Below, piece after piece: positions 4,864 to 61,054 of a stretch of DNA of 64,000 nt. The notes below the pieces were generated by a model that was given only the letters and a program-made list of their open reading frames with translations, was not told the DNA's origin and did not search any database. The translations under genes and the position numbers were made by a program. The stretch is taken from sequence record MT939492.1. The stretch is one strand, 5' to 3'. Each line of letters begins with the position of its first letter. The first letter of the stretch is position 1.

Positions 4864-4872
4864 ACAACATAC

Positions 4873-4902
4873 GGGGAGGGGCTTTCGCCCCTCCCCTATG
4901 CC
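4873..4902. terminator. Bidirectional GC hairpin flanked by CATA/TATGCC
   Basis: GGGGAGGGGC-TTTC-GCCCCTCCCC-TATGCC between convergent genes. Confidence 0.75.
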
Positions 4903-4904
4903 CT

Positions 4905-7814
4905 TTACTTGGCCAGCGTGTGACGCAGCGGATCGATCTGAACGTCGTCCTCGACCACCAGCGTATCGTCGCTCTTGGCAACAATGCGCTTGCGGACAGA
5001 ACAACGCAGGGTATCGTCCAGTGCCGTGATGACCGGGAAGTTGTTGGCTCCGCCCAGTCCAGACACGCTGAATGCGATCGCTTCGTTGCCGATCTCTTCG
5101 CGCAGCTTGTCGGTGATGTCGTCGATGGTCACCGTCGACTGGATCAGACGATCAGCAATGACCAGCTTGATCGAACGAGTCAACGACTCACGCAGACGTG
5201 CATCAGCGTATTCCGCACGGCCCAGATACAGACCAACACGCAGACCCTGTTCGGCCGGGATGTTGGAGATCAGACCTTCCTCGACCATGACCTGCACATT
5301 ACCCAGCGTGGTCTGCGGAGCGAAGTACAGTTCAGTGCCTTCCAGCAGCTTGGCACGGATGGTGGCAATGTCGGTAGTGAGCCAACGGACCACGGTCTGT
5401 GCCGTACTGTCACGATACGCCACCGAAACCGGATTGGTAGCGAACCAATACTTGCCGTCCAGGAAGAACAGGTCAACCTGACGCTGCATCTTGCGGGTCG
5501 ACTCGACCATCGGGTTGCCGTCAGCATCACGCATGACGTCGCCCTTCAGGAAGCGGATCATCGGTTTGCCTTCGTCATCCAGACGAACCTCGCCCTTGGC
5601 ATGGAGCATCCGGTACTTCATCTCACCGTCGACGATGTCGTACAGGATCGTGCCAGTGGCAGGATCACGTGCGAACTCCGGCTCATCGTAGACCCACGGC
5701 ACGTCGGCCGAGTAACGCTTGTAGTCTTCTTCGGAGACCACCGAGCGAGAGGCCGACCACAGACCGTCCAGCGAACTGCCCATGTTGGTGTTGAACTTCT
5801 CATGGGTCAATGCGATGGCATCTTCCGGCAGCATCTCCTTGGCGATGATCAGGTCGATATCCGTGGTCAGCGTATCCACCGGACGGTAGTCGCTCAACAC
5901 GTAGAACAGATCGAAGCTCTCGGTCAGCGAAGCCGGCACCGGACGGGTGCTTCCACCGAACATCTGGAAGTTGGTCAAGTACAGGTCATCGTTGCTGTTG
6001 ATGTCCAGGTTGGACTCCAGCTCGAACACGTACGCGCGTTCACCCGAGGGCAGCTTGACGTCCAGCACGCCATTGAGGTAAGCGCGGCCACTCTCACCGG
6101 TGGGCTGGAAGCTGAGCTGCGCATGCACACTGCTGTCAGGCAGTGCAAGAGCTTCTTCGCTGGAGGCGGTCACCACGGTGATGCGGTAGCCCTTCTCGGT
6201 GCGCTCGATATCGAAGCTTTCGGTGGAGATGGTCATCCCCAGCGTGTCGTTCTCGGCGATGAAGTTGCGGCTGTCGATGGACGGGTTGTCCAGGTAATAG
6301 CCGCGCGTGTCGAAAACGTTGCCGGTGATGTCCAGCACGTAGTGATACGGGCTGAACAGATAACGCTCCGAATTGATCAGGCGAGCCCGGGTTTCCAGGA
6401 TGGCGCCGTTGATCATGTTCAGCTCGTCCTTCTCCACGATCTTCACCAGACCGTTGTCGAGCTTGTAGAGCATCTTCGGCGACAGGGTGACACGCTCCCC
6501 GTTGTCGTAGACACCCTCGTAGCCCTTCAGGCCCTCCAGAGACTGCTGGAAGGTCATGATGCCAGCGCCGATGGGGCTGAGCACCGAACCATCCTCAGGC
6601 AGCGGCAGAGGGCGGGAGGTCTTGTAGATACGACGGGTCAGGTTGTCCACGGTCTTGACCGAGGAGTAGCCTTCGTTGGTGAGGGTGGAGATGATCTGCC
6701 ACGGGGTGATCGGCTGATTGGAAGCGCCATGAGCATTCATCATGACCTGCTCACGCAGCACCTCGAACGACTTGGCACCCGAGCCACCGGTGACGACTTG
6801 GTCGGAGTAGACCAGCAGCGTGGTGATGTTCTCCAGCGCCGCCCAGTACACCCCGTTGTCGTCGTTGTCGAAATCCTGCCAACGATAGTCGAACGCATCC
6901 GACTCGTAGTTGGACAGAATCATCGACAGCTCGCCTTCGGTGGAGTAGACGTCCAGGCGCAGCTGCTTCTTGATCGTGCCTGCCGTGGCGTAGACTTCAG
7001 GCACCGAGTACATCACGCGGTCGGAGTATACCTGCAGCGCAACCGTGGGTTGAGCCGGGTCGAAGACCTGACGCGTTTCGGTGGTGAGGATCTCTTCCCA
7101 CGGACCATCGCCGGAACGGTGGTAGGCGCGAGTGGCGTAGTAGCTACCGCCGAAGGTGATCGCGCCGCTGGTCGGACTGGCCTTGCTGACGACGAAGTTG
7201 TTGCTGCTCACCTTCATCTGCATGACCGGGATCTCGATGAACAACATCTCGATACCACCCACCAGACTACTCTTCCAGGTCTTGAGCAGGTTGGTCGACA
7301 GCGGCATGAGCGGCGACGGACGGGTAACGTCGTACACCACGCGCTCGGTGCCAGCGCTGTTGATGCGGATCTCGATCGGGTATTGCATCGAGAAGGTCAC
7401 ACCTGCCACCGTGAACTCGGTGTTGCGCGGGATCACCATCTTCTGCACGCCGTTCACGCCAGTGGGCACAGAACGAGCCAGCACTTCTTCCATCGCCATT
7501 GACACGGTGATCGTGGTGCGCGACGGAGTCGCCCAGCGGCCGATGTAGTCCTTGTCGGACATGTGCAGGTACAGCTCTTCTTCGTCCAGCGCCATGCGAG
7601 CGAACTGGCGACGCGTGTTGGCAGCGCTTTCATGCATGGCAGAGGCGGCCAGCGTGGCGGCCATTTCGATCAACTGGACTGCCGGCTGGCTGGCGTCGAC
7701 GAAGATCAGCTCTCCGCCATTGGCCTGCTCCAGCATGTCGACACCCACCTCGAACATGGCGCCCGGATTGTAGCGAGCCTTGTCCAACAGCACCAATACG
7801 TCATTCGAGTTCAC
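4905..7814 (-). CDS. Large virion structural protein (tail/baseplate, phiKZ gp087-like)
   Basis: 969 aa from GTG 7814 (RBS GAGGAGG; GTGA overlap with the upstream stop); size and position match the phiKZ-like cluster. Confidence 0.65.
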   Translation of the reverse strand: MNSNDVLVLLDKARYNPGAMFEVGVDMLEQANGGELIFVDASQPAVQLIEMAATLAASAMHESAANTRRQFARMALDEEELYLHMSDKDYIGRWATPSRTTITVSMAMEEVLARSVPTGVNGVQKMVIPRNTEFTVAGVTFSMQYPIEIRINSAGTERVVYDVTRPSPLMPLSTNLLKTWKSSLVGGIEMLFIEIPVMQMKVSSNNFVVSKASPTSGAITFGGSYYATRAYHRSGDGPWEEILTTETRQVFDPAQPTVALQVYSDRVMYSVPEVYATAGTIKKQLRLDVYSTEGELSMILSNYESDAFDYRWQDFDNDDNGVYWAALENITTLLVYSDQVVTGGSGAKSFEVLREQVMMNAHGASNQPITPWQIISTLTNEGYSSVKTVDNLTRRIYKTSRPLPLPEDGSVLSPIGAGIMTFQQSLEGLKGYEGVYDNGERVTLSPKMLYKLDNGLVKIVEKDELNMINGAILETRARLINSERYLFSPYHYVLDITGNVFDTRGYYLDNPSIDSRNFIAENDTLGMTISTESFDIERTEKGYRITVVTASSEEALALPDSSVHAQLSFQPTGESGRAYLNGVLDVKLPSGERAYVFELESNLDINSNDDLYLTNFQMFGGSTRPVPASLTESFDLFYVLSDYRPVDTLTTDIDLIIAKEMLPEDAIALTHEKFNTNMGSSLDGLWSASRSVVSEEDYKRYSADVPWVYDEPEFARDPATGTILYDIVDGEMKYRMLHAKGEVRLDDEGKPMIRFLKGDVMRDADGNPMVESTRKMQRQVDLFFLDGKYWFATNPVSVAYRDSTAQTVVRWLTTDIATIRAKLLEGTELYFAPQTTLGNVQVMVEEGLISNIPAEQGLRVGLYLGRAEYADARLRESLTRSIKLVIADRLIQSTVTIDDITDKLREEIGNEAIAFSVSGLGGANNFPVITALDDTLRCSVRKRIVAKSDDTLVVEDDVQIDPLRHTLAK

Positions 7815-8845
7815 GACAGCAGCCTCCTCTTGGCATCTTCGTAATCGAGCTTGGTCACCCACCATTCAAGGCGGCCAGACTTCGGATCGATTCGCGGATA
7901 GCCCTTGTAGTTGAAATAGACCAGCTCAGCCTTGGTCAGACGCTGCATCTTCTGTTCGCGATCACCATCGAACATGTCGCGGTTGAAGAAGCAGACAGTG
8001 GAGTTGAACTCCACAAACAGGATCGGGTCGTACGGTTCGTAACCAAGGCACTGGAAACGAACTGCGATCTCCTTACTGTCCTGACTCATTGCCTGATCGG
8101 CATTGAAGTTGAACACCGCACCCAGCGGGTTGGCCGTGGGGAAAGCGCCGGCGCAGGCAGTGATACGCTGCACATACTGACGGGTCGGATCGAGCACGAG
8201 GCGATAGATTCGCGTCATGTAGTCGATCTCGTTTTCCAGCACCATCAGCGGGTAAGGCAGCATCGTGCCCTGCGTCACTTCGGCGATGTACTTCATCCAC
8301 ACGTAATACAGCAATGTTATAGGGTCACCTGTCACATTGCGGTAAGTTGCAGTGAGTGGGAAGGCTGAGAAGTCACGCGAGATGCCGTCGGCCATCGTGT
8401 AAACTTCTCGGTGCGCACCCGGTTTCGAAGTGAACGTATCGAGCTCTTGATCAGGCCACCCCGTCAGACTGAGGAGGTGGTTGGTCAGCGGCGTTATGAA
8501 CGCTTGCTTCGGATCGATCAGCGGGGTGTTCACCGCCTTTCGAGCGCTGGGGTCTTCAGGATAGTGACCCCAGGGATCGAGCAGGCAGCGGATAGCACGC
8601 TGATAGCTGTATTCCTCGGGCGTCAACAGAGGTGTCAGCTGGCGGCACGACGCAACGTTGTCGTATGCAAGATTCAACAAAGGCCTGGTGAAAAAGATCA
8701 GACCCTGATTGTCGGTATTCAGGGGGATCGGATTGCCCAAGCCGCGATGGTTGATGCCGTACAACGCATCAGACGATGCCCGGCTGAAGGAACCAAGACC
8801 CGATCCTTGCGAGATCAGGTTGATATCCTCTTGATATGTACCCAT
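7811..8845 (-). CDS. Virion structural protein (phiKZ gp088-like)
   Basis: 344 aa from ATG 8845 with RBS GGAGG (the ORF-track start at 8989 overlaps the divergent gene); syntenic position. Confidence 0.6.
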   Translation of the reverse strand: MGTYQEDINLISQGSGLGSFSRASSDALYGINHRGLGNPIPLNTDNQGLIFFTRPLLNLAYDNVASCRQLTPLLTPEEYSYQRAIRCLLDPWGHYPEDPSARKAVNTPLIDPKQAFITPLTNHLLSLTGWPDQELDTFTSKPGAHREVYTMADGISRDFSAFPLTATYRNVTGDPITLLYYVWMKYIAEVTQGTMLPYPLMVLENEIDYMTRIYRLVLDPTRQYVQRITACAGAFPTANPLGAVFNFNADQAMSQDSKEIAVRFQCLGYEPYDPILFVEFNSTVCFFNRDMFDGDREQKMQRLTKAELVYFNYKGYPRIDPKSGRLEWWVTKLDYEDAKRRLLS

Positions 8846-13294: not shown

Positions 13295-13326
13295 AGCCGA
13301 GGCCCCTTCGGGGGCCTCGGCTTTAT
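13295..13326 (+). terminator. Hairpin terminator
   Basis: AGCCGAGGCCCC-TTCG-GGGGCCTCGGCT-TTAT. Confidence 0.75.
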
Positions 13327-14669: not shown

Positions 14670-14698
14670 GGGAGACCCTTCGGGGTCTCCCTTATGCC
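14670..14698 (+). terminator. Hairpin + TATGCC
   Basis: GGGAGACCC-TTCG-GGGTCTCCC-T-TATGCC. Confidence 0.75.
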
Positions 14699-14728
14699 GC
14701 TATGCCCTAAAACCATGATTCAAATAAG

Positions 14729-14746
14729 TTTCACCCCTATATCACC
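14729..14746 (+). promoter_or_regulatory. Candidate phage early promoter motif
   Basis: TTTCACCCCTATATCACC, intergenic, after a terminator. Confidence 0.5.
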
Positions 14747-14822
14747 CATGTGAGCGTCGACTTCAATTGCCGGCGTTAATCACACCCAATGTTTCACCAC
14801 CCTGAAGAGGAAGGAGTTTCAC

Positions 14823-15209
14823 ATGTCCAAGAATACCCCGATCCGTGACGTTGCCACCGCTACCAACCTGCTGCGCGCTGCTGTTCTGGCCAACATCAAC
14901 GGCGACCTGCTGTCGAAGCTGATCAAGGATCTCTCCGAGAACGACTCGGTGACCGTCTCCGGCGCCACCATCGACCGCGAAACCTTCGATGCCGCCATGG
15001 CCGAAATCAACGCATCGCTGATGCTGAACGAAGCCAACCTGGTCGATCCGGAACACTACGCCGGCGAGCAGATCAAGGAAGGCATGGGCTGGGCCGGCAA
15101 GACCCTGGTCGCCGGTGTGGTCATCGGTGGCCTGGCTGGTCTGGCCTACTGGTGGTACAACAACCGCGAAGGCGGTGACGGCACCCTGTTCGGCCGTACC
15201 GGCTTCTAA
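14823..15209 (+). CDS. Small protein with C-terminal transmembrane helix
   Basis: 128 aa, RBS AAGGAG, TM segment TLVAGVVIGGLAGLAYWWY. Confidence 0.65.
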   Translation: MSKNTPIRDVATATNLLRAAVLANINGDLLSKLIKDLSENDSVTVSGATIDRETFDAAMAEINASLMLNEANLVDPEHYAGEQIKEGMGWAGKTLVAGVVIGGLAGLAYWWYNNREGGDGTLFGRTGF

Positions 15210-15230
15210 GCCAGCGCTGCTGAGCATAGG

Positions 15231-15256
15231 CTCCACTCCCCTTCGGGGGAGTGGAG
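15231..15256. terminator. Hairpin preceded by GCATAG, with T11 downstream
   Basis: CTCCACTCCCC-TTCG-GGGGAGTGGAG. Confidence 0.7.
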
Positions 15257-15316
15257 ATCAAGGGTAGTCTTTTTTTTTTTGTCGATGTTATGACCCATGT
15301 CTAGAAAGAGGCCGAC

Positions 15317-17026
15317 ATGCCCAGCGGTTCTATCACGATTGACGAGACCTACGACAGCATCAGCCGGCCGGTGGTTTATGATGTTGTCCGTCAAATCCAG
15401 AAACTCACCGGTGCCCCGATCGGCACGACCATTCAGTACATCGGTATGTCCGGTGCTAGCTACATGAATGGCTCTACGCTCACTCCCCCTGAGGAGTTCA
15501 ACACCTTCTCCCATGCAAACAAGATGCGCGTGGAAGTGGTGGAGGACGTTGATGAGCGTTCGTTCCTGACCATGAACACGCACCAGAAAAATGCCATCGC
15601 TGTCTTCAGTGATCAGGCGCTGGGTGTTCTGGTGTATCCGATCTACTCGGCCACGATGGCCAGGATCAACTTCCAGTTCCGCGCAGAGAATGCGACGGTG
15701 GCTGAGCGTTTCCGCAATGACCTGCGCATGCGCACGGGCAAGGGACGCATGGAGAATCTGCACGTCGTCGACTACAGTTACTCCTTCCCCAAGGAGTTCC
15801 AGTACATCCTTTCCCGCATCTACGACCTGCGTGAAGAGCAGGGCGGTTACGGCCAGGAGTTCGACGAGTACCTCGAAGAGCACGGTTCCAACAAGCTCAC
15901 CGTGGTCACCAACCAGGTCGGGCAGCAGCCTCGCTTGGTGATTGCTGAACAGCAGATCCAGGTGCAAGGTTGGTTCGAGTTCTCTGCATTGCCAGATCAT
16001 CCGACCAAGGACGGCGAAGCGTCGGCTGTACAGTTCGACTTCAGCTACGTCTTCCAGTACGACAAGGTAACCGGTGCGCACATCGAGTACCCGATGGTCG
16101 TACACAACCAAGTGATTCCGGAAGACATTCGCCCTGCGCATGGCGAAGGCATCTACTCGCCGGATCAGCACTACCGCGCGCAGTCCTTCGATACACTGGC
16201 GCTGGAGCAGTTCAGCAAGTTGTTCCGTCCGCCGGGTTGCTGTCTGGATGGCGTGGTGTTGCCGTACTTCGACGACTGGATGCCCAAGCGCGTGCCTACG
16301 GGAACGTCCTCGATCATCACGCTGATGATTGCAGCCAGCCCGAATTCCGATCGCAATCTCGGCAATCTGTATCACCTGGGCGACTGGAAGTTGGACGATG
16401 ACCTGATGGCTTTCCTGATCGCCGAGCGGAAGTACATCTCGGTACTGGGTAAGTCGGTTGTCCACATGGCGCTGTTTGAGGGCAACATGCCTTTGACTGA
16501 CGGCGCCGTGAGTCTGGCTGAGGATGGCTGCGCGATCAAGCGGTTGGAGATTGACATGCGCAAGGTGTATCACCTGCGGCTGTCCATGCTCAACCATCTG
16601 CAACGCATCTCCACCGAAGACTGGAACCGCATGCGTAAGCATGGCAAGGCGCTGGTCAAACTGCTCACGCAGATCCAGTGCGGCTTTGCCAACGGCGCTT
16701 GGATTCCGGAATTGCTGCCCAATGGCTCTGTAGCCATGCGCGATATCGAGATCATCGTCAAGCGCGTCCAGATGCAGCGCGGTAACTACTTCAACGGCGT
16801 GGAGCATGTCATGCTCACCGTCGGCAACTACACACTCGTAACCTGGAGAAAAGAAGATGTCCTTCGTGACGGGAGCGGATCCCAACAAGGCGCCACCGGA
16901 GCCGACGCGTCGGCCGACTGGGGTAGTCGTGACGAATCCAGAGTATCGCGGTGTGACGGTGAATACCCGACACGTCCCGAGCTCTTCCCTGCTGACATTC
17001 GTCAGCGGCCAGAGTTGGATCGTTGA
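15317..17026 (+). CDS. Virion structural protein (phiKZ gp098-like)
   Basis: 569 aa, RBS AGAGG; overlaps the next gene by 170 nt; syntenic position. Confidence 0.55.
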   Translation: MPSGSITIDETYDSISRPVVYDVVRQIQKLTGAPIGTTIQYIGMSGASYMNGSTLTPPEEFNTFSHANKMRVEVVEDVDERSFLTMNTHQKNAIAVFSDQALGVLVYPIYSATMARINFQFRAENATVAERFRNDLRMRTGKGRMENLHVVDYSYSFPKEFQYILSRIYDLREEQGGYGQEFDEYLEEHGSNKLTVVTNQVGQQPRLVIAEQQIQVQGWFEFSALPDHPTKDGEASAVQFDFSYVFQYDKVTGAHIEYPMVVHNQVIPEDIRPAHGEGIYSPDQHYRAQSFDTLALEQFSKLFRPPGCCLDGVVLPYFDDWMPKRVPTGTSSIITLMIAASPNSDRNLGNLYHLGDWKLDDDLMAFLIAERKYISVLGKSVVHMALFEGNMPLTDGAVSLAEDGCAIKRLEIDMRKVYHLRLSMLNHLQRISTEDWNRMRKHGKALVKLLTQIQCGFANGAWIPELLPNGSVAMRDIEIIVKRVQMQRGNYFNGVEHVMLTVGNYTLVTWRKEDVLRDGSGSQQGATGADASADWGSRDESRVSRCDGEYPTRPELFPADIRQRPELDR

Positions 17027-18871: not shown

Positions 18872-20247
18872 TGGCCAAGACAATCCGCGAATCCCCGCTC
18901 TGGGATGAGATTCAGGATGTCATGAAGAACGGGTCGAAAGCTATCCAGTATCACTGGACGGCTGTGCTGCGCGCCAAGGAGATTGAGTACGACACCATCT
19001 GTGTGCTCTCGGTTGACAACGACCGAAACTTCCATGGGCGCTACGCCGACCACATGTTTGTCGAGGTGGCTGTGCAACCCGGCACGTTCTACGCTGACAT
19101 CTTCCCGCACAACGACACGCTGGAGATCATCCTCACCCGCACGCCCAAGTTCATTGCCGGTTCCACAGAAACCCCCGACGAAGCCCCCATGGTGCAAACC
19201 TACCGGGCCAGCATCGTCAATCCGAAGAACCCCTTGGTCACCATGAAGCAGGACTTTGGCGACAACAAGGAGGCGATGAATCTGTCTGACGTGGCTCGCG
19301 TTACGTTCCAGGTCTTTGACCACGCGTTGGAACAGCTGATGATGAAGACAGTCAATCAGGGCGCGACTCGTTCACGCCCCGGTGGGTTGGCTCGTTGGAT
19401 TCTCACCAATCTCAGTAAGGACATTGAGGTTGATGACGAATACAAGATCACCGGTGTGAGCATCGTCGACTATTCCAATCAGGAGCCCAGACCTCTGGTT
19501 CAGGTTCCTGCCGGAACGCGCTTTGTGGATGCGCCGCTGTATCTGCACGAACACCAGGGCGGGATCTACTCCGCCGGCATGGGCTACTACCTGCATGGTC
19601 GCGCATGGTACATGTATCCCTCCTACGACGTTACGCGCTTCAACACGGCCCGCCCGAAGCTTACGGTCATCGCAGTACCTGCCGACAAGCTGCCGGGCGT
19701 GGAGCGCACGTTCATGCGCGATAACACGCACACCACCATCATCGCAACCGGTGGCATCGAGTATCTAGACCCGACGGAAGGTCAGAAGCTCTCTGACGGT
19801 AACGGCGTCCGCTACAATGACAGCCGGAACGTCATGGAAGCTTATGGCGAAGTGGAGGGGAACAAGCTCAAAGTCGACAACTCGCTCAACACGACCGAGT
19901 ACGTCACCGAGCAGCGTGAGAATGGACTGAACAACGTCCAGACTGGCGCGCGTAAGTTCACCTCCAATCCGTTCGTCGAATCCTCGCTGCTGGCCAAGCG
20001 CAATGGTGCGTATGTGCAGGTCGTCTGGGAGAATAGCTCGGTTGACATGATCGAGCCGAACATGCCGGTACGCTACATGTACGTCCAGGGTGGTGACGTC
20101 AAGGAAGCCATGGGTACGCTGGCACAGGCGCACATGATCGTCGAACCCACCCAGCAGGGCATCGTCTTCGCCACGCACGTCCAGAAAACCATCCTGACGA
20201 TCTTCATCGGGTCGAAGCTGGACTGGGCTCAGGTCACCAATGAATGA
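18871..20247 (+). CDS. Virion structural protein, probable baseplate hub-like (phiKZ gp101-like)
   Basis: 458 aa, TGATG coupling, last gene of the structural block. Confidence 0.5.
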   Translation: MAKTIRESPLWDEIQDVMKNGSKAIQYHWTAVLRAKEIEYDTICVLSVDNDRNFHGRYADHMFVEVAVQPGTFYADIFPHNDTLEIILTRTPKFIAGSTETPDEAPMVQTYRASIVNPKNPLVTMKQDFGDNKEAMNLSDVARVTFQVFDHALEQLMMKTVNQGATRSRPGGLARWILTNLSKDIEVDDEYKITGVSIVDYSNQEPRPLVQVPAGTRFVDAPLYLHEHQGGIYSAGMGYYLHGRAWYMYPSYDVTRFNTARPKLTVIAVPADKLPGVERTFMRDNTHTTIIATGGIEYLDPTEGQKLSDGNGVRYNDSRNVMEAYGEVEGNKLKVDNSLNTTEYVTEQRENGLNNVQTGARKFTSNPFVESSLLAKRNGAYVQVVWENSSVDMIEPNMPVRYMYVQGGDVKEAMGTLAQAHMIVEPTQQGIVFATHVQKTILTIFIGSKLDWAQVTNE

Positions 20248-20252
20248 CATAA

Positions 20253-20281
20253 GGGAGGGGCGTAACGCCCCTCCCGATATG
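20253..20281 (+). terminator. Hairpin ending the structural block
   Basis: GGGAGGGGCG-TAA-CGCCCCTCCC-GATATG. Confidence 0.7.
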
Positions 20282-20295
20282 CGCTGTAAAAAAGA

Positions 20296-22502: not shown

Positions 22503-22530
22503 GGGGAGAGGGCAACCTCTCTCCTATGCC
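22503..22530 (+). terminator. Hairpin + TATGCC
   Basis: GGGGAGAGG-GCAA-CCTCTCTCC-TATGCC. Confidence 0.7.
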
Positions 22531-22552
22531 GTAAATCAAAGGGAGAAGTACC

Positions 22553-23657: not shown

Positions 23658-23686
23658 AGAGGGAGGGCTCAGGCCCTCCCTCTATG
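23658..23686 (+). terminator. Hairpin + ATG(G)
   Basis: AGAGGGAGGGC-TCAG-GCCCTCCCTCT-ATG. Confidence 0.65.
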
Positions 23687-23694
23687 GAGCTTAG

Positions 23695-42100: not shown

Positions 42101-42111
42101 CTAAGCATATA

Positions 42112-42141: not shown

Positions 42142-42175
42142 CTTTTCTTTCCAGAAGTACCACAATGGAGTTTCA

Positions 42176-42864: not shown

Positions 42865-42913
42865 CACCCAACCCTTCTTACACCACTAAAACCTAACACC
42901 CCGTGGAGATCCA

Positions 42914-43447
42914 ATGAACAACAAGTCGCAGCTGTCCCAGACCATTTCGATCGAAGTCAACGCCTACACCGATCCGGTCCGCACCAATGAAATCGCTGAC
43001 AAGCTTCGCGCCATGATGGTGGAAGACGGCCCGAGCGAAGCCAGCCTCACCACGCACTTCTCCAGCGACAACAAGCCGGAGTACCCCACGGCTGTCATCA
43101 GCAGCCAACTGCGCGTCCACGGCTTTGATGGTCGTCTGAGGATCGAACTGGAAGCCAGCGAAACGCTCATGACCAACAACTTGCTGATGGTGGAATACAA
43201 GCGCAAGCTGCAGGCCATGAAGTTGGCTCGGGAAGTATTGGAGCTGATCGCCAGCTTCAAGAAGGAGATCAAGATCGTTGGGAACGGCTTCGCAGCTGAC
43301 AGCGGTCCTGCTGGCACCCCGATCCCCCTCGATCAGTTCATCTCGCCGAAAGAACGCGAAGACCTCAACGTGCGCTTCGGCCCGCTCTACCTCCTCGGCC
43401 ATCTTCACGACATCGCCTCTGGTGTCGTCGCTGAACTGCCCAAGTAA
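42914..43447 (+). CDS. Hypothetical protein
   Basis: 177 aa, RBS GGAG. Confidence 0.65.
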   Translation: MNNKSQLSQTISIEVNAYTDPVRTNEIADKLRAMMVEDGPSEASLTTHFSSDNKPEYPTAVISSQLRVHGFDGRLRIELEASETLMTNNLLMVEYKRKLQAMKLAREVLELIASFKKEIKIVGNGFAADSGPAGTPIPLDQFISPKEREDLNVRFGPLYLLGHLHDIASGVVAELPK

Positions 43448-43463
43448 CTGACCCACCCTCTCG

Positions 43464-43487
43464 GGGCGGGGGCTAACCCCGCCCTTT
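43464..43487 (+). terminator. Hairpin + TTT
   Basis: GGGCGGGG-GCTAA-CCCCGCCC-TTT. Confidence 0.65.
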
Positions 43488-43517
43488 CCTTCGAGCACTA
43501 CCCCAACGGAGTTTGAC

Positions 43518-44459
43518 ATGTCCAATGTACAACTGACCCAGAAGATCGATTTCGCAGGCTGGCACGATATCCACGGCATCCCCAGCGGTCTGTGGGACGA
43601 TCCGAACTGCGACTTCGAAACCGATATCGAAGGTCACTACAACTACGGTGACGTCGAGTTCGCACACACCCAGTTCCTGCCCTACGGTGTCCGCGCCCAG
43701 GCACGCGCCGATACCAGCGTCGGTCGCAACGCCAAGGAGATCGACCCCGATCTGCGCTACGTGGTGACCAACGGCATGCTGCTGTTCGAAACCTACTACA
43801 CCTACAGCGGGGCTGCGGTTGACAAGTTCCCGGCGGTCGGCGTACTGACCCCCGATGAACTGCTGATCTTCGGCGCACCTGACTGGTCGCTGTGGGAATC
43901 GCGCAACTTCGGCCCGCTGGACTACTTGCGCTTCAACATCGCCAAGCTGCGCATGTCGCTGCCGCTGCTGATGCGTCACAACCTGATCATGGTGGGCGAG
44001 AACAAGTACTCCTTCGCTGAGATCTACCGCTCCAACCGCGTGGCCAATGCTGGCAATCGTTCGGCCACCCCGGTGCACCTGAACCGTGCCGGTGCTACAC
44101 TGTCCCGTCGTCTGGCCAATGCGTTCCCGACGATGAACAGCTTCCTGGAACGTGGCGTGTTCTCCGCGCGTGCTTTCGAAGTGCAGCCGATCCTGGATGA
44201 ACTCACCGGTATCCATCCGGACCTGGAGTTCAGCCACCTGCTGCACCGTGGCAAGTACGCTCGCATGAACACCACCTTGGTGGACCTGTACAACCAGATC
44301 AACCGGGTGATCCAGCTCAACCGTGGCGAAGACCCGCCGCAGATGCTCTACGACCTGATCAAGCAGTACAGCCAGGAAGCCGCCTCTGTGGCCCGTACGG
44401 ACATTCGCCGGTTCGGCCGCACCCGCGATACCAGCTACCTGTCAGTGATCCCCAAGTAA
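43518..44459 (+). CDS. Hypothetical protein
   Basis: 313 aa, strong codon bias, own hairpin terminator. Confidence 0.7.
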   Translation: MSNVQLTQKIDFAGWHDIHGIPSGLWDDPNCDFETDIEGHYNYGDVEFAHTQFLPYGVRAQARADTSVGRNAKEIDPDLRYVVTNGMLLFETYYTYSGAAVDKFPAVGVLTPDELLIFGAPDWSLWESRNFGPLDYLRFNIAKLRMSLPLLMRHNLIMVGENKYSFAEIYRSNRVANAGNRSATPVHLNRAGATLSRRLANAFPTMNSFLERGVFSARAFEVQPILDELTGIHPDLEFSHLLHRGKYARMNTTLVDLYNQINRVIQLNRGEDPPQMLYDLIKQYSQEAASVARTDIRRFGRTRDTSYLSVIPK

Positions 44460-44470
44460 GCGGACATAGC

Positions 44471-44494
44471 GCCCTAGCCCTTCGGGGCTAGGGC
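44471..44494. terminator. Hairpin preceded by CATAG
   Basis: GCCCTAGCCC-TTCG-GGGCTAGGGC. Confidence 0.7.
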
Positions 44495-44550
44495 AATACC
44501 TGAGGACTTTTCTTTTTTGTCGTCATGCTATGACAATGGGAGGACTCTTT

Positions 44551-45069
44551 ATGGTGACAGCAATTGGAATCGGCGTAAAACTGGGCAAGGCGGTCACCTG
44601 GTTCATCAAGGGTGGCTGGAAGAAGATCCTCGCTCTGGTGATCTTGGCTGCGATCGCCTACGGCATCGTGATGGGGGTCATGCGTGTCTATGACCACATC
44701 TACGACCGTGGCGCGGCAGCTCAGCTCAAACTGGATACGGTGGCAATCACCAAGCTCCAGAAAGACCTGGCCGACAAGACCGAAGACCTGCGCAAGTTCA
44801 AGCAGGAATACGGCGACTGGATCTCGGCCGGGGAGAAGGTCAATGGGGAAGTGGATGTCGGTCAAAAGGAGCTGATGGCAGAACTTCGCCTGAAGCTGTT
44901 GGCATCTGAACAGAAGGTCAAGGAAAAGGAGCAGTTGCTCAATGAAATCCGCAAACAAATCGGCGCGTCTGACGATGTTGCTAGCCCTGGTACTGCTGGC
45001 TTTGCTCGGCTGTACAACCAATCGCTCGAAAAGCCCAAGCCCGCAGCAAAACCTGCCGCAGGTAACTGA
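44551..45069 (+). CDS. Inner-membrane spanin (Rz-like)
   Basis: N-terminal TM followed by coiled-coil heptads; overlaps a lipoprotein gene; RBS GGAGG before ATG 44551. Confidence 0.7.
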   Translation: MVTAIGIGVKLGKAVTWFIKGGWKKILALVILAAIAYGIVMGVMRVYDHIYDRGAAAQLKLDTVAITKLQKDLADKTEDLRKFKQEYGDWISAGEKVNGEVDVGQKELMAELRLKLLASEQKVKEKEQLLNEIRKQIGASDDVASPGTAGFARLYNQSLEKPKPAAKPAAGN

Positions 45070-45313
45070 CGAGATGATGGAAGTGCGTCCCGAACTCCAA
45101 TCGATTCCGGTTGGTGGCAAGGGACGTGAGCCGAAGCTCAGCGAGATCGCCCAGGTGGCGCTCACCAACAACGCTGAAGCCGTGGCGCGCGGCGACATCA
45201 TCGAGGCGTGGCAGTACTGGTACACCAGCAACCGCGCCATCATCGATGCGGCATTCGCCAAGTTTGGCATCAAGCCGCCGGTACTCACTGAAGACAAAGC
45301 AAAGAGCAAGTAA
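44942..45313 (+). CDS. Outer-membrane spanin lipoprotein (Rz1-like)
   Basis: Lipobox LALLGC after a hydrophobic signal; Pro-rich; overlaps the i-spanin gene by 128 nt. Confidence 0.7.
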   Translation: MKSANKSARLTMLLALVLLALLGCTTNRSKSPSPQQNLPQVTDEMMEVRPELQSIPVGGKGREPKLSEIAQVALTNNAEAVARGDIIEAWQYWYTSNRAIIDAAFAKFGIKPPVLTEDKAKSK

Positions 45314-45714
45314 TGAGCGATTTCGAAAACGAGTTCGAGGCCGTAGAGGCCGAAGCTCAGGCACTGGTCAGCAAGCAGGAAATCTTCACCTTCAGTCCTG
45401 CCGAGATCTTTGCCAATACCCGCGAAGCCAAGTACAGCATCGGCGATGATGCCTGGATGGGAATCTTCATGGGCAACGTGAACCCCAAGCCAGAAGACAA
45501 GCCCGACGCAGCAATCCCGGTGGTGATCGTTGGCGTGGTCAATTTCCACAACAGCGTGGCCTACCGTGTCGGTTATCGTGGCGACGACGGCATGATTCGG
45601 TTCGACAACGACCTGATCGACGAAGAGGACATCTACGATGATCCGATCTACCTGGATCGTCCTCGACAGACGCCTGAGCGTGGCAAACGCCCGGCGCTGT
45701 TCATCGTCAAGTGA
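45313..45714 (+). CDS. Hypothetical protein with SspB-like ClpX-binding C-terminal tail
   Basis: Ends DEEDIYDDPIYLDRPRQTPERGKRPALFIVK; compare SspB GGRPALRVVK. Confidence 0.6.
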   Translation: MSDFENEFEAVEAEAQALVSKQEIFTFSPAEIFANTREAKYSIGDDAWMGIFMGNVNPKPEDKPDAAIPVVIVGVVNFHNSVAYRVGYRGDDGMIRFDNDLIDEEDIYDDPIYLDRPRQTPERGKRPALFIVK

Positions 45715-45722
45715 CCAGCTAG

Positions 45723-45751
45723 GCAGGGGGCGAAAGCCTCCTGCTCTATGC
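45723..45751 (+). terminator. Hairpin + TATGC
   Basis: GCAGGGGGC-GAAA-GCCTCCTGC-TC-TATGC. Confidence 0.7.
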
Positions 45752-45819
45752 TGTCAAAAATGAAATCTGGGGTTAGTGCTATGTACTAACCCTTATCCAC
45801 TTTGGAAGAGCAAGTCCAA

Positions 45820-47127
45820 ATGTCCGAATTCACGCAAGAACAGAAAACGAGTCTGGTCGAGGTCATCCTCTGGTTGTTGGAGGCAGAGCCGCCGGCCGTC
45901 CTGGAAGAAGTGCTGGCACTGATCAGCCACATGCCCGGTCACCTCGCATCGCTGAAGGAACCACCGCTCCACATCAACGGGATGTTCTACGTCCGTGGTG
46001 ACTCGCTCGCACGCATCAGCGACTACCTGTCCAAGCGCACGGTGAAGGTGAAGCTGCATTCCCGTTATGGTCAGATCGGCGATCAACAACAGGATCCGCT
46101 CAACTTCGGTACGGCGTACTATCCGGACCTCACTCTGCCGAAGGGTCTTGCACCGTCGAACGTCAAGCCGCGTAGCGTGCGTCTGGACACCACGCCCAGC
46201 CTGATCAACGCATCGCGCGTCATGGCGAGCGGCAAGTTCGACGTCAATGCCAAGGGTGGTGCCCAGCCAGCCGAAGCGTCCTTCCTGCTCAGCGCACCCG
46301 GTCAGAACGACGGCCTCAGTCCGACCGACCATGAGTTCCATCTGCACAGTGCGACCAGGGTATCGCCCAAGCTCAACATGGAGCACGGGTACAGTACCTT
46401 CAGCATCGGCGATGAAGTTGTCGACGTGCTGGCACTGACCTCTGAACAGGAAGCGCGCCTGCGCCAGACTGGGAAGTACGTCTTCCAGCGACTGCATGCA
46501 GAAAAGCTCTCGATGATGCACGCTCACCGCAAGCGCCAGATCTTCCACATCCTGTACCCGATGATGAAGACCATCGGCACGATGGCTGCCCAAGGTGCCA
46601 TCGAAAAGCACCTGACCACCGACGACGCCTCGATCGGCAACGACGGGCCTCAGTTGAGCCGTGGCGGTGTACCGTTCAATACCCGTACTGACGTGATCGA
46701 GTACTTGGTACACGCCTTGGCTACCAAGCTGCGTATCCGCGTCTTGATCGAGAACTTCGACCTGGAGTGGGAGCGTCCGTCTGCCTACTGCGGCTGCACG
46801 CGGGAGATCCGGCTTCGCTACAATCCGGAACACCATACGTGGGCAATGGGTCCGACTTCGAATTATCACGACGATCCTACCTTCCAGTTCACTCCCGAGC
46901 TTGCGGCGAAGCTCCTGCACATGGTGCTGGAGAAAGAAGACTTCTCCCTGCCCGACGATCATCCGTTCAACGATATCTCGCTGAACGAAGCAGTCGCCGT
47001 GGCATCCTTCAAGGACGCCGACCATCTGCTGATGTGGGGACCGCGCACGCTGGCAGAACCGGGCAGCGCGTTCCAGCGTCTCAGCGAAACCACCCTGCTT
47101 CGTTACTACGTCAAGGAAAAGAACTGA
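45820..47127 (+). CDS. Hypothetical protein
   Basis: 435 aa from ATG 45820. Confidence 0.7.
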   Translation: MSEFTQEQKTSLVEVILWLLEAEPPAVLEEVLALISHMPGHLASLKEPPLHINGMFYVRGDSLARISDYLSKRTVKVKLHSRYGQIGDQQQDPLNFGTAYYPDLTLPKGLAPSNVKPRSVRLDTTPSLINASRVMASGKFDVNAKGGAQPAEASFLLSAPGQNDGLSPTDHEFHLHSATRVSPKLNMEHGYSTFSIGDEVVDVLALTSEQEARLRQTGKYVFQRLHAEKLSMMHAHRKRQIFHILYPMMKTIGTMAAQGAIEKHLTTDDASIGNDGPQLSRGGVPFNTRTDVIEYLVHALATKLRIRVLIENFDLEWERPSAYCGCTREIRLRYNPEHHTWAMGPTSNYHDDPTFQFTPELAAKLLHMVLEKEDFSLPDDHPFNDISLNEAVAVASFKDADHLLMWGPRTLAEPGSAFQRLSETTLLRYYVKEKN

Positions 47128-47128
47128 C

Positions 47129-47947
47129 ATGACCAGCAACAACATCAAGCCCCACAGTCCCAAGTCGGTTGCCGACGAACTCCTGATCGGTCCCGTGTTC
47201 GACAAGGTCTACGCCATCAACGAACTGGCCGGCAACGCACGTGACCAGGGGCATCGCATCGCCAAGCACCAGATGGATATCATCGATCTGGAAGTGGACG
47301 AGCTGCGCGATGGCATCGCCAACAACGACCTGCACGAAATCATCGACGGCGTCGGTGACGGCCTGTTTACCATCCTCGGCCTGGCTGGCCGCTACGGGTT
47401 CGACGCTGCTGAAGTGCTGCGCCGGGTGAACGAAAGCCAGTTCTCCAAGTTCGACAAGAACATGGACGACCTGCTGGACACCCGTACCAAGTACACCCGC
47501 CTGGGCGTTGAAACCTTCTTCATCAAGAAGGAGTACGAGGGCGAAACCGTCTACGTGACCAAGGTCAGCGAAACCGTCACCGGCACCGACGGCAAGACCT
47601 ACCTGAAGGGCAAGTGGCTGAAGTCGGTCAACTTCCAGGAACCGCGCTTCGATGACATGATCGAACTGATCATCAAGCAGGAACTGAAGCTGCGCTGCTC
47701 TGTGGAACCCACCAGCTCCGCTCCGGTCTCCGAGTGGCCGACCACGCTGAAGTCGTACATGGTCAAGCTGGACGCGGACAAGCAGCGCTACATGCTGCGC
47801 GAAGCCGGCTATTTCCTGGGCGAAGAAGGCGTGATCGTCAGCGACCTGGCCGCATGGGCAGCTGCCGAAGCCGAAGTCAAGGCGAAGGAAGAAGAAAAGC
47901 CCTGGTACGCCGAAAATACCGGACAGTCCGGCGAAAGCCAGGCCTGA
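47129..47947 (+). CDS. MazG/PRA-PH-like nucleoside-triphosphate pyrophosphohydrolase
   Basis: EVDEL...EIIDGVGDGLF.ILG...V..S.FSK acidic helical motif pattern. Confidence 0.7.
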   Translation: MTSNNIKPHSPKSVADELLIGPVFDKVYAINELAGNARDQGHRIAKHQMDIIDLEVDELRDGIANNDLHEIIDGVGDGLFTILGLAGRYGFDAAEVLRRVNESQFSKFDKNMDDLLDTRTKYTRLGVETFFIKKEYEGETVYVTKVSETVTGTDGKTYLKGKWLKSVNFQEPRFDDMIELIIKQELKLRCSVEPTSSAPVSEWPTTLKSYMVKLDADKQRYMLREAGYFLGEEGVIVSDLAAWAAAEAEVKAKEEEKPWYAENTGQSGESQA

Positions 47948-47948
47948 C

Positions 47949-47982
47949 GGCATAGAGGGAGAGCCCGCCAGCTCTCCCTCTA
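47949..47982. terminator. Convergent hairpin with GGCATA on the left
   Basis: TAGAGGGAGAGC-CCGCCA-GCTCTCCCTCTA between convergent genes. Confidence 0.7.
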
Positions 47983-47986
47983 ATAG

Positions 47987-48181
47987 TTACGCCACAAGCC
48001 GATCAATCGGCACTTCATTGATGTAGCGGTCCGCTTCTTCCTGGTGGGGGAAGCGAGCCAGCATCGAGCCGGTTTCGGTGTTGATCACATGGAAGGGATA
48101 CTTGTCGCCTTCCACCTCTTTCACGTGGGCCAGTTCAGCGCGAGTCTTCTCCGCCTGCTGGACCTCTTTCTTGCCTTTCAT
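47987..48181 (-). CDS. Small hypothetical protein (only minus-strand gene recognised in the accessory region)
   Basis: 64 aa from ATG 48181 (AAGGT RBS); converges on the hairpin at 47953. Confidence 0.55.
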   Translation of the reverse strand: MKGKKEVQQAEKTRAELAHVKEVEGDKYPFHVINTETGSMLARFPHQEEADRYINEVPIDRLVA

Positions 48182-51196: not shown

Positions 51197-51211
51197 TTCG
51201 TCGGCGACATA

Positions 51212-51242
51212 CGGAGGGGACTTCGGTCCCCTCCGCTATGCC
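51212..51242. terminator. CATA-hairpin-TATGCC
   Basis: CGGAGGGGAC-TTCG-GTCCCCTCCG-C-TATGCC. Confidence 0.75.
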
Positions 51243-51311
51243 CTAAACGTCCCCAATCCTATGGTGAGGTAGAACTCGCCATAATCGACAGACCCGATAG
51301 GAACTCTGACA

Positions 51312-51717: not shown

Positions 51718-51747
51718 GGGGAGGAGCTTCGGCTCTTCCCCTATGCC
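51718..51747 (+). terminator. Hairpin + TATGCC
   Basis: GGGGAGGAGC-TTCG-GCTCTTCCCC-TATGCC. Confidence 0.75.
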
Positions 51748-51760
51748 GTATCCCAGTGTA

Positions 51761-51778
51761 TTTCAAACCTACACTATC
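51761..51778 (+). promoter_or_regulatory. Candidate phage early promoter motif upstream of sspB
   Basis: TTTCAAACCTACACTATC. Confidence 0.55.
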
Positions 51779-51821
51779 GAACTGAGTAATACCTGACGCA
51801 TCAATCCAATCAATTGTAATC

Positions 51822-54160: not shown

Positions 54161-54166
54161 TCAGTA

Positions 54167-54197
54167 GTCGGAGGGGGGTAACCTCTCCGACTATGCC
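54167..54197 (+). terminator. Hairpin + TATGCC
   Basis: GTCGGAGGGG-GGTAA-CCTCTCCGAC-TATGCC. Confidence 0.7.
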
Positions 54198-54211
54198 TTC
54201 TGGAGAACTAG

Positions 54212-55962: not shown

Positions 55963-56574
55963 ATGGCATCCAAGAAGAAGAACAAAGTTCAGCGTCACGT
56001 CGTTGTTAACTCCGCAAGTTGGATGGCGGATCTGCCGATGGATATCCTCTGGCAGCAGGAGCAGTTCATCAAGACTTTGATGTCTGAGAAACTGCCGATG
56101 TGGTTTGCGCCGTTGTTCATGCGCTTTGCCGAACACCTGTATCAGCCGACCCGTTATGCGACTCATGTCTACCATGGGGTGCGTACGCCGGGTCACCGGC
56201 GGTGGTTCCTGAGTCTGCACGCTTTGGGTTCTGTAGACGTGCTGAAGGTGCTCGATGTCGCTGTCATCAACACGATGGGGGAAATGCCACCCAAGCATGA
56301 GCGGGCGATTGTATATAAGCCCGATGGTCCGTACGAGCCTTTCGCGGAAGAGTTCCGCCTTTGGTCGCGTACTGCCGGACCCGCTCGTACTGGGTGGTAC
56401 AGCTTTGATGCTAGCGTAAGGCGTTTGCTGTGCGCACTGTACCGCAGTGGAGTTGAGATGTGGCATGAGCCGAGCGAGGCAGAGGGTTCGTTCACTGTGT
56501 GGATGTACCACGATCGCTCATTGGTGCGTTTGGACTTCCGTTCCCAGACTTGGCAGGTTTGGGGAAGTCATTGA
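55963..56574 (+). CDS. Hypothetical protein (Trp-rich)
   Basis: 203 aa ORF. Confidence 0.6.
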   Translation: MASKKKNKVQRHVVVNSASWMADLPMDILWQQEQFIKTLMSEKLPMWFAPLFMRFAEHLYQPTRYATHVYHGVRTPGHRRWFLSLHALGSVDVLKVLDVAVINTMGEMPPKHERAIVYKPDGPYEPFAEEFRLWSRTAGPARTGWYSFDASVRRLLCALYRSGVEMWHEPSEAEGSFTVWMYHDRSLVRLDFRSQTWQVWGSH

Positions 56575-56575
56575 C

Positions 56576-56604
56576 GGCATAGGCGGGAGGGTTTTCCTCC
56601 CGCC
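56576..56604. terminator. GGCATA-hairpin
   Basis: GGCATA-GGCGGGAGG-GTTTT-CCTCCCGCC. Confidence 0.7.
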
Positions 56605-56655
56605 GTATTTAATAACAAGATTCCCTTTTCCTATAGTCACCAGGGGAGAAACACC

Positions 56656-59024: not shown

Positions 59025-59401
59025 GCGAAGAAAAGATCCGTTTCGATGCCGTGCTGGAACTGGCTGCTGCCAGTGCTGCCGACCTCTCCCAGAAGCGCTA
59101 CGCCGCTGCCAGCGATTTCGCCGGCCAGCTCAAGTGCATCCTGACCGATGCCCCGACGATCGTGAAGTTCTACGTGGAAGAGAACGGCACTCTGATCATT
59201 CCGATCAACGTCATGAGCGGCTTCAGCTTTGCCACTTCCAAGTCGGTGCAGGAAGACCCCCTGCTGCTGCCGATCCTGGAAGATATCGCACGTGACGCCA
59301 TCGGCGTGCTCGGTACGCGCATCATGCGTTCGGACCAGGGCGTGTGTGTAGTCGTGCCGGTCTTCTTCGGCAAGAACGAAGCGCCTGCCGAAACGGCATA
59401 A
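59021..59401 (+). CDS. Hypothetical protein
   Basis: 126 aa from ATG 59021. Confidence 0.65.
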   Translation: MSEEKIRFDAVLELAAASAADLSQKRYAAASDFAGQLKCILTDAPTIVKFYVEENGTLIIPINVMSGFSFATSKSVQEDPLLLPILEDIARDAIGVLGTRIMRSDQGVCVVVPVFFGKNEAPAETA

Positions 59402-59435
59402 TGGACGGGAGGCCCTTCGGGGCCTCCCTCTATGC
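59395..59435. terminator. GGCATA-hairpin-TATGC
   Basis: GGGAGGCCC-TTCG-GGGCCTCCC-TC-TATGC. Confidence 0.7.
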
Positions 59436-59506
59436 TGCACATTTTCTTTTGGCTGTAAAAGACGACCGGGGACCAGAATGATTTGGAGACATACCGGCCT
59501 ACCAAA

Positions 59507-60613: not shown

Positions 60614-60629
60614 CCCCGAGATTCCCTGC

Positions 60630-60662
60630 CTCCCACTCCCTGCAGCGGGGAGTGGGGGGTTT
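60630..60662 (+). terminator. Hairpin
   Basis: CTCCCACTCCC-TGCAGCG-GGGAGTGGGGG followed by TTT. Confidence 0.6.
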
Positions 60663-60695
60663 ATTCCCCTCCGCTGCGACAAGTGAACAACGACC

Positions 60696-61013
60696 ATGAG
60701 CAATACCAATCCGCTGTACTACGCACTGGCCGAAGAAGGCTTCCTGATCCGCGAACTGGATCGCTACAACGTCAACGACCCGGCTGAAGCCGACAAGTTG
60801 CACGAAGAGCAGGATGGCGACTACCTGGCCATGCAGGACAACCTGCAGCACTTCCGTCGCGTCATCGGCACCGACAACCTGCACAGCCGCAGCTTCGCTC
60901 TGGATACCGATGAACTGATCCTCACCGAGATCAACGACGAAGATTCCGACAAGCACGACCTGGTCTACGATGGCAGCATCATCGACGAAGCCCTGAAGCG
61001 CCACGGCTTCTGA
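60696..61013 (+). CDS. Acidic hypothetical protein
   Basis: 105 aa, strong codon bias. Confidence 0.65.
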   Translation: MSNTNPLYYALAEEGFLIRELDRYNVNDPAEADKLHEEQDGDYLAMQDNLQHFRRVIGTDNLHSRSFALDTDELILTEINDEDSDKHDLVYDGSIIDEALKRHGF

Positions 61014-61021
61014 TGCAGTCG

Positions 61022-61054
61022 GCCGAGAGGGGTCCGCCCTCTCGGCTTTATGCC
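61022..61054 (+). terminator. Hairpin + TATGCC
   Basis: GCCGAGAGGG-GTCCG-CCCTCTCGGC-TT-TATGCC. Confidence 0.7.

Follow-up and report, generated by a model that had tools for sequence, protein, structure and literature searches.

The intergenic DNA of Xanthomonas phage Xoo-sp14 carries a recurrent element in which a stable, GC-rich hairpin is followed, in the place of a U-tract, by a short tail typified by TATGCC, and is often preceded by the reverse complement of that tail, GGCATA. The window analyzed here comprises the first 64,000 bases of the 232,104-bp record MT939492.1 (a 12-kb stretch compared with that record gave 100% identity at the same coordinates). We consider these elements most probably to be transcription terminators of the phage, or at least signals that form RNA 3′ ends, of a type conserved in the phiKZ-like jumbo phages (Chimalliviridae). 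Judged by architecture and tail they are not a new kind of element, and would be the Xoo-sp14 copies of a stop signal already mapped in phiKZ and 201phi2-1.

A finder of perfect and near-perfect inverted repeats with stems of at least 8 bp returned 127 hairpins genome-wide, 77 of them intergenic and 25 of the intergenic ones in the window; two shorter window hairpins (32655 and 39299) bring the intergenic total to about 27, the figure given in a preliminary description of this DNA, which had also remarked on the frequent TTCG loops (found in 12). TATG lies at or just past the 3′ foot of 16 window hairpins and CATA at the 5′ foot of 11. The individual sites of that description all hold in the sequence: of its 16 hairpins with a nearby downstream TATG, 11 have exactly TATGCC on the plus strand (4897, 14693, 22525, 29146, 30647, 38972, 42136, 51237, 51742, 54192, and 61049), and the five sites given for (GG)CATA just upstream of a hairpin, where the motif is on the minus strand, are likewise present (29112, 38938, 47949, 56576, and 59395); all 16 of these sequence-verified sites have the foot of such a GC-rich stem within 0–5 nucleotides (nt). 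The window contains 27 copies of TATGCC against 16.2 ± 3.5 in shuffles, a modest excess, but this raw count understates the signal, the strength of which is in the position at hairpins. Read outward from the stem, TATG occurs within 10 nt on 72 of 154 intergenic hairpin sides genome-wide (binomial P 2e-78), against a background of 2.0% of intergenic windows off hairpins and 1 of 100 sides of in-gene hairpins; a hairpin foot is touched by 26 of the 55 genomic TATGCC and by 23 of the 31 genomic GGCATA. The enrichment check proposed in the preliminary description comes out modest against shuffles and strong by position, and chance does not account for the association of GGCATA and TATGCC with the hairpins, which is genuine. 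Enrichment of 7-mers in the intergenic DNA returned TATGCCG and pyrimidine runs and no motif beyond these, and no match in the window reached the gathering threshold of any curated Rfam family.

Alignment of 64 tails on TATG gave the consensus Y-TATG-Y-Y-S-Y (C/T at position −1; then C/T, C/T, G/C, and T/C), the most frequent form being TATGCCG followed by T or C (TATGCCGY), with a stem-to-tail offset of mostly 0–2 nt. The stems are 8–14 bp long, very GC-rich and often variants of GGGAGGGGC/GCCCCTCCC, and the commonest loop is TTCG. The upstream (G)GCATA is the opposite-strand copy of the tail. RNA folds of ten window elements gave −23 to −30 kcal/mol, with z of −4 to −7 against shuffles, and in elements with two arms the folds pair one arm with the other, extending the stem across a small bulge.

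Hairpins start 1–25 nt past stop codons, and their occurrence depends on the orientation of the flanking genes: 18 of 19 convergent gaps have the element, as do 31 of 111 gaps between plus-strand genes (++ gaps) and one of 17 divergent gaps, and none of 11 gaps between minus-strand genes (−− gaps) does. Stop signals, and not start signals, are distributed in this way. Convergent sites normally have a tail on both strands. The claim in the preliminary description that two such sites carry the motif on the strand of the minus gene is accurate for 47953, with a full TATGCCG, and needs amending for 4873, where it is the plus strand that has the full TATGCC, the minus strand having the weaker TATGTTG. 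Among the elements of ++ gaps, 14 have a sense tail only, 11 have both arms and nine have only the antisense-facing arm; sense and antisense arms co-occur at chance level (odds ratio 1.7, Fisher P 0.40). Selection for pairing between the two arms was considered and set aside, there being no excess co-occurrence; given this, and the variability of the antisense arms described below, we read the arms as independent, strand-specific tails. Hidden minus-strand genes do not explain the sites with only an antisense-facing arm, since the candidate minus-strand open reading frames (ORFs) at 44488–45549 and 15206–16888 score as non-coding and the annotated plus-strand genes as coding.

The gene content of the phage that carries these elements, with RNA polymerase beta-like genes, a phiKZ-type capsid protein and a homologue of the phiKZ protein gp123, identifies it as a phiKZ-like jumbo phage that encodes split multisubunit RNA polymerases; the guess to this effect implied in the preliminary description was right. 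The record has 251 annotated genes, most on the plus strand, and several are annotated as “RNA polymerase beta subunit.” A search with the capsid protein found 227 phage records headed by jumbo phages of Pseudomonas, Erwinia, Salmonella, Serratia, and Ralstonia, the closest capsid proteins being those of LucasX and RTH11 at just 42–47% identity, and Xoosp14_123 (genome 90255–91877), which the record calls hypothetical, is homologous over its full length to PHIKZ123/gp123, the beta-like subunit of the phiKZ non-virion RNA polymerase (E 7.6e-93). Xoo-sp14 is also named in a paper on the Chimalliviridae. No close relative was found in the GenBank phage collection; IMG/VR contains two near-complete ones of 234 and 230 kb with the same gene order, in which the thymidylate synthase protein is 89% and 75% identical to that of Xoo-sp14 and the DNA is ~76–86% identical in conserved stretches. 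Contigs ~98% identical to Xoo-sp14 are present in a sequencing run labeled as a marine metagenome.

We compared 19 orthologous hairpin sites across Xoo-sp14 and the two IMG/VR relatives. This direct comparison replaced a covariance model, as a MAFFT alignment of 33 elements put stems that are C-rich first and stems that are G-rich first out of register. The TATG of the sense-facing tail is kept at 13 of 13 sites in each genome having the site, one copy reading TATGTCG, and loops vary freely (GTAAC, CTAGC, and TTTAC at 20253, for example, where flanks and stem are kept in both relatives). Compensatory stem pairs were found at 30620 (the relatives also have a GGCATA arm upstream of this element), 38945, 42112, 47953, and 51212: a C-G to G-C change at 38945 in one relative, two pairs at 42112 together with plus-strand U·G wobbles, two changes at 47953 in one relative, and an A-T to G-C change at 51212. 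At 54165 the stem is remodeled in the relatives and the tail retained, and at 38945 the other relative has a quite different hairpin, with CATA before it and TTATGCCG after it. The U·G wobbles at 42112 and 35562 pair only in plus-strand RNA; the wobble produced by C>T at 42114 recurs in a metagenome contig, as the one informative change among the differences listed for contigs compared over 42000–47990. Antisense-facing arms, by comparison, are present in all three genomes at five of nine orthologous sites and gained or lost at the other four (22503, 29122, 30620, and 42112). The pattern fits an RNA hairpin with a sequence-specific tail that would act mainly on the sense transcript, the opposite-facing tail being under weaker selection.

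The closest known system is that of phiKZ itself, in which transcript 3′ ends were mapped by Oxford Nanopore Technologies (ONT)-cappable-seq and 61 terminators share a motif of a stem-loop and a TTAT region (Putzeys et al., 2024, microLife; PMC10914365). The consensus ends ...GGGRRGG-B-Y-TTAT-K-YY-GT, so that the tail is YTTATKYYGT, and 9% of the phage terminators in that study are antisense to genes (PMC10914365). With K = G and YY = CC the phiKZ tail equals TTATGCCGT of Xoo-sp14, and the two phages share the GC-rich hairpin with GGGAGGG/CCCTCCC-like arms and often a TTCG loop, the position at gene ends and the two-way forms at convergent genes. The 50 kb of phiKZ that we inspected have the same architecture, including the upstream CATA(A) arm (GCATAA-hairpin-ATTATG, for example); Xoo-sp14 differs in its longer stems (8–14 bp), mostly G-rich on the 5′ side. 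In 201phi2-1 a motif resembling that of phiKZ (motif A) is found at 59 terminators and a motif B co-occurs at 21 sites, elongating the hairpin; eight terminators of this phage, chosen for low read-through in data from the phage itself, gave graded termination in a terminator-trap reporter in the uninfected host (PMC11512511). The GGCATA arm has a like effect on stem length in the Xoo-sp14 folds, and motif B may correspond to the CATA arm. Like a canonical intrinsic terminator, the Xoo-sp14 element has a stable GC hairpin directly past the stop codon; unlike one, it has no U-tract, 42 of 47 TATG tails having fewer than five T in their first 8 nt and only five having that many (T-rich tails are confined to a minority of hairpins, such as 43464 and, beyond the window, 167813). 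The tails of phiKZ pass as ordinary hairpin-plus-U terminators, whereas TATGCCG, in a genome of 58% GC, is not U-rich.

Both features of the phiKZ type, a GC stem-loop at gene 3′ ends with two-way convergent forms and a specific tail after the stem, are found in Xoo-sp14, and the assignment to that type is made on architecture and tail, not on the literal 30-nt string. The architecture extends to further phages, as the preliminary description had proposed to check: hairpins are accompanied by CATA in 10 of 19 and TATG in 9 of 19 cases in LucasX, by CATA in 7 of 13 and TATG in 6 of 13 in RTH11, and by TATG in 4 of 12 in RSL2, and Erwinia phage pEa_SNUABM_54 and Vibrio phage pVp-JHP1101 gave one example each of CATA(A)-hairpin-(T)TATG. 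Goslar had no hairpins at the threshold used. XacN1 is a jumbo phage that also infects Xanthomonas but is outside the phiKZ-like group and depends on the host polymerase; in 50 kb of its DNA the flanks are at none of seven strong hairpins, which have A/T-tract flanks instead and no TATG; since the XacN1 hairpins lack them, the flanks go with the phage family and not with the host.

As we picture it, a stable GC-rich hairpin would form in the nascent sense RNA, the tail Y-TATG-Y-Y-S-Y at 0–2 nt past it would take the place of the U-tract, and a phage RNA polymerase moving in the direction of the tail would stop there. Because GGCATA is the tail on the other strand, the palindromic GGCATA-hairpin-TATGCC would be a two-way stop, obligatory at convergent genes; about a third of co-directional gaps have it as well, and there it would block antisense transcription. 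Of the options raised in the preliminary description, that of a terminator or 3′-end signal specific for a phage RNA polymerase is thus the one supported by the phiKZ-like architecture and tail, the gene-end position and the near-complete occupancy of convergent gaps. The sequences show the position of the elements, their statistics, conservation and covariation, and their likeness to the motif at the mapped phiKZ 3′ ends; the formation of RNA ends in this phage, the polymerase that stops and the way the tail is read are things that we infer. Several observations weigh against a terminator. Taken literally, the 30-nt consensus of phiKZ is matched nowhere in the window at three or fewer mismatches, because stem length and polarity differ, though that string summarizes a logo and the phiKZ copies inspected also fit it inexactly. 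At the nine ++ sites with an antisense-facing arm only, some of them (such as 44471) conserved in that form, the sense transcript meets a tail-less hairpin, and about 20 ++ hairpins have a T-rich tail or no recognizable one, so the tail is not obligatory.

It also counts against termination that the ONT-cappable-seq 3′ ends of the relatives do not separate it from trimming back to a stable hairpin, and this favors a processing or stability element, in which the polymerase would read through, the RNA would be cut in the A/U flanks or trimmed by an exonuclease, and the hairpin would protect the upstream message. The hairpins are very stable in the folds, and in this genome of 58% GC no single-stranded stretches other than the flanks are A/U-rich. 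RNase III hairpins of the T7 type have ~20 bp of double-stranded RNA with an internal loop; the both-arm form, which has 14–19 bp and an internal loop or bulge, recalls them, and single-arm elements have 8–12 bp. Half-elements with one arm are common, so that a double-stranded lower stem is not required; the precise 8-nt tail, conserved across phages of 37% to 58% GC, is more specific than the known preferences of RNase E; and the activity of the 201phi2-1 terminators in uninfected cells also speaks for termination (PMC11512511). We regard processing as improbable. A palindrome that acts in the DNA and has nothing to do with RNA structure, whether as a cruciform, as a small mobile repeat or as the site bound by a dimeric phage protein, would account for the perfect inverted repeat GGCATA...TATGCC at about 11 ++ sites and most convergent sites, and the replacement of the 38945 hairpin between like flanks in one relative could be read as that of a mobile copy; but stem sequences differ freely among copies while pairing is kept, the U·G wobbles function only in plus-strand RNA, the arms are often single, independent of one another and unequally spaced on the two sides, and the elements are strictly at gene 3′ ends, all of which makes this reading highly implausible.

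The composite cassette of the preliminary description, in which the hairpin stops one unit and the TATG of the tail, with its G, is the start site at which a non-virion RNA polymerase begins the next, has this background: in phiKZ, late transcription starts at the G of a TATG promoter, a sequence necessary but not sufficient (PMC4666361), and a pocket of the beta-like subunit gp123 binds TATG in the non-template strand (PMC12809450). In an HMMER alignment of Xoosp14_123 with gp123, eight of the 14 pocket residues are identical (S144, F151, K158, N186, H331, S334, N398, and Q466), two are replaced conservatively (H185 to Y, Y406 to F) and four differ; because most of the pocket is kept, TATG is probably a promoter word in Xoo-sp14 too. 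In keeping with this, hairpin-free TATG in ++ gaps is found 49 times in the sense and 20 times in the antisense direction (2.5-fold), many copies lying 22–52 nt before start codons with A or G usually next; four precede the capsid gene (L002:36469-36555, in coordinates where L002:40255 is genome 90255), and most divergent gaps have a TATG pointing at each gene. Such sites away from hairpins probably serve as middle or late promoters like the TATG promoter of phiKZ. The tail shares the four letters of that promoter and differs otherwise: it is longer, conserved through TATGCCGY, is placed where genes end, and in convergent gaps on both strands, where a start would yield antisense RNA only, and tolerates T or A for G (TTATTCCG at 35562, TTATACCG in relatives; that is, TTATT or TTATA for TTATG). 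In many gaps, moreover, a second TATG lies beyond the tail (15289, 30775, 37579, 44529, 45780, and 51260). Owing to these differences of context and position, the convergent gaps and the variants, it is unlikely that the tail is itself a late promoter.

What the cassette proposal captured correctly is the arrangement at four window sites, where the promoter would be a separate element. A 40-nt motif, GATTCCAA-N4-TTTCAACCCTATAT-N-ACCTAG-N-TGA-N-GT, has 11–13 copies in the genome and none in shuffles; the 11 core copies that were located all fall in intergenic DNA and read along the plus strand, and most are 10–30 nt past a terminator tail. The pattern matches a repeated 40-mer with TATATTAC in the phiKZ early region, with sites also in Goslar and two close relatives, and it matches the early-promoter consensus sequences of the phiKZ family, which have been published for phiKZ (TATATTAC), EL (WTTTYAAACCTACATTATY), 201phi2-1, OBP, and N1M2 (PMC7058600, table 2). 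It stands downstream of the tail and is not part of the hairpin element, and the units that it marks in Xoo-sp14 are probably the early ones, transcribed by the virion polymerase.

How a polymerase might recognize the tail invites a more speculative proposal, namely that the tail is read as a word instead of acting as a weak RNA-DNA hybrid: the gp123-type pocket (that of Xoosp14_123), which would also recognize non-template TATG at late promoters, would catch TATG after the hairpin emerges, causing a pause and sequence-specific termination without a U-tract. It fits this proposal that TATGCCG is kept at 58% GC though U-richness is lost, and that in AR9, the late promoter of which is not TATG, TATG follows none of 13 hairpins, although the test is a weak one at the 26% GC of AR9. 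Coding sequences contain 181 TATG against 313 expected (0.58) and 79 CATA against 188 (0.42) under a second-order Markov model, placing both among the most avoided 4-letter words; this in-gene avoidance also fits, and may reflect selection against stray polymerase signals, stop-codon and codon-usage effects not being separated from it. On the other side, the elongating complex is reported to have an incomplete pocket (PMC12809450), and the geometry is tight, a pause at G leaving only 3–5 nt between the stem and the RNA 3′ end. We hold this proposal to be doubtful.

Table 1. Predicted hairpin-tail elements, early-promoter motifs and hairpin-free TATG sites of Xoo-sp14 (window positions; “genome” marks positions outside the window)
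Feature	Position	Strand	Description
Putative two-way terminator	4864-4904	.	Convergent Xoosp14_4 (+)/Xoosp14_5 (-); stem 4873-4896, loop TTTC; plus tail TATGCCCT; minus tail GTATGTTG, appearing upstream as CAACATAC; fold -27.4 kcal/mol, z -6.1
Hairpin with tail like the T variant at 35562	13295-13322
Putative terminator after Xoosp14_11	14670-14700	+	Stem 14670-14691, TTCG loop, tail TTATGCCGC; second TATGCC at 14701
Putative early-promoter motif	14717-14756	+	Core 14729; ~15 nt past tail of 14670 terminator
Hairpin after Xoosp14_12	15221-15256	-	Stem 15231-15256, TTCG; minus-facing tail only (GCATAGG upstream), no sense tail
Hairpin after Xoosp14_16	20244-20285	.	Stem 20253-20275; CATAA upstream, GATATGCGCT downstream
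Putative terminator after Xoosp14_19	22503-22532	+	Imperfect stem 22503-22524, tail TATGCCGT, unchanged in both relatives
Hairpin after Xoosp14_22	23658-23690	+	Stem 23658-23683, foot overlaps TATG (CTCTATGGAG); next start codon 11 nt on
Palindromic element after Xoosp14_33	29110-29153	.	GGGCATA, 4-nt spacer, stem 29122-29145 (TTCG), TATGCCGT; fold -29.3 kcal/mol, outer arms paired
Putative terminator after Xoosp14_36	30620-30654	+	Stem 30620-30645, TTCG loop, tail TTATGCCGT
Putative early-promoter motif	30667-30706	+	Core 30679; downstream of 30620 terminator
Putative terminator (T variant)	35562-35593	+	Stem 35562-35581, tail TTTTATTCCG, fits TTAT-K-YY-G with K = T; conserved in relatives
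Putative terminator after Xoosp14_46	37522-37556	+	Stem 37522-37543; TATGC then nine T (TATG/T-tract hybrid)
Palindromic element after Xoosp14_49 (38945 element)	38936-38979	.	GGGCATA, stem ~38948-38971 (loop GAGA), TATGCCGC
Putative early-promoter motif	38988-39027	+	Core 39000; downstream of 38945 element
Palindromic element before Xoosp14_55	42102-42143	.	GCATATA, stem 42112-42133 (TTCG), GTTATGCCCT
Hairpin after Xoosp14_58	44461-44494	-	Stem 44471-44494; minus-facing tail only (GACATAGC upstream); same in both relatives; overlapping minus-strand ORF not coding
Putative terminator after Xoosp14_61	45723-45754	+	Stem 45723-45744, tail TCTATGCTGT, kept in both relatives
Putative terminator of minus gene Xoosp14_64, convergent gap	47947-47982	-	Stem 47953-47982, minus tail TATGCCGTC, no plus tail
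Element after Xoosp14_67	51204-51244	.	GACATA, stem 51212-51235 (TTCG), CTATGCCCT
Putative terminator before Xoosp14_69	51718-51749	+	Stem 51718-51741 (one mismatch), tail TATGCCGT
Putative early-promoter motif, most diverged	51749-51788	+	Core 51761; directly past tail of 51718 terminator
Putative terminator after dCTP deaminase gene	54165-54199	+	Stem 54165-54193, foot overlapping TATGCCTT
Hairpin with GGCATA upstream	56574-56617	.	Stem 56582-56604; GTATTTAATAAC downstream, a T-variant tail; flanks identical in relatives
Element after Xoosp14_81	59393-59438	.	GGCATA, 6-nt spacer, stem 59407-59428 (TTCG), TCTATGCTGC
Hairpin with tail like the T variant at 35562	60629-60659
Putative terminator after Xoosp14_84	61022-61056	+	Stem 61022-61046, tail TTTATGCCCT
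Putative early-promoter motifs outside the window	genome 68394, 70963, 81603, 176253, 195996, 227275, 227607	+
Hairpin-free TATG	15289, 21595, 30775, 37579, 44529, 45780, 49438, 51260

Some observations concern individual gaps. The 713-nt unannotated gap upstream of the 56582 element is mostly filled by a plus-strand ORF of 203 codons (55963–56574) that ends 1 base before the GGCATA; its codon score is 0.00 (neutral), compared with a median of 0.33 for annotated genes, and its status as a gene is uncertain. The convergent gap at genome 95417–95506 contains two hairpins, the plus gene having one of the T-tract type and the minus gene the tail TCTATGCC, and a similar double-hairpin layout is found at one convergent gap in LucasX and RTH11. 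The 11 −− gaps without a hairpin-TATG element belong to a minus-strand structural block (genome 101450–127831), which seems to be a block of virion genes lacking internal stops of this type and ending at the two-way element at 101401.

Taken as terminators, the elements show where transcription units end and, combined with the copies of the early-promoter motif and the TATG sites away from hairpins, would provide a first transcription map of Xoo-sp14, a candidate biocontrol phage against rice blight. Should the pocket proposal be true, one reading pocket would serve both the start and the stop of transcription. Comparison of this GC-rich copy with AT-rich phiKZ indicates that the conserved part of the signal is the word TATG-Y-Y-G and not a run of U, which suggests that the divergent polymerases of the phage specifically read this word as a termination signal.

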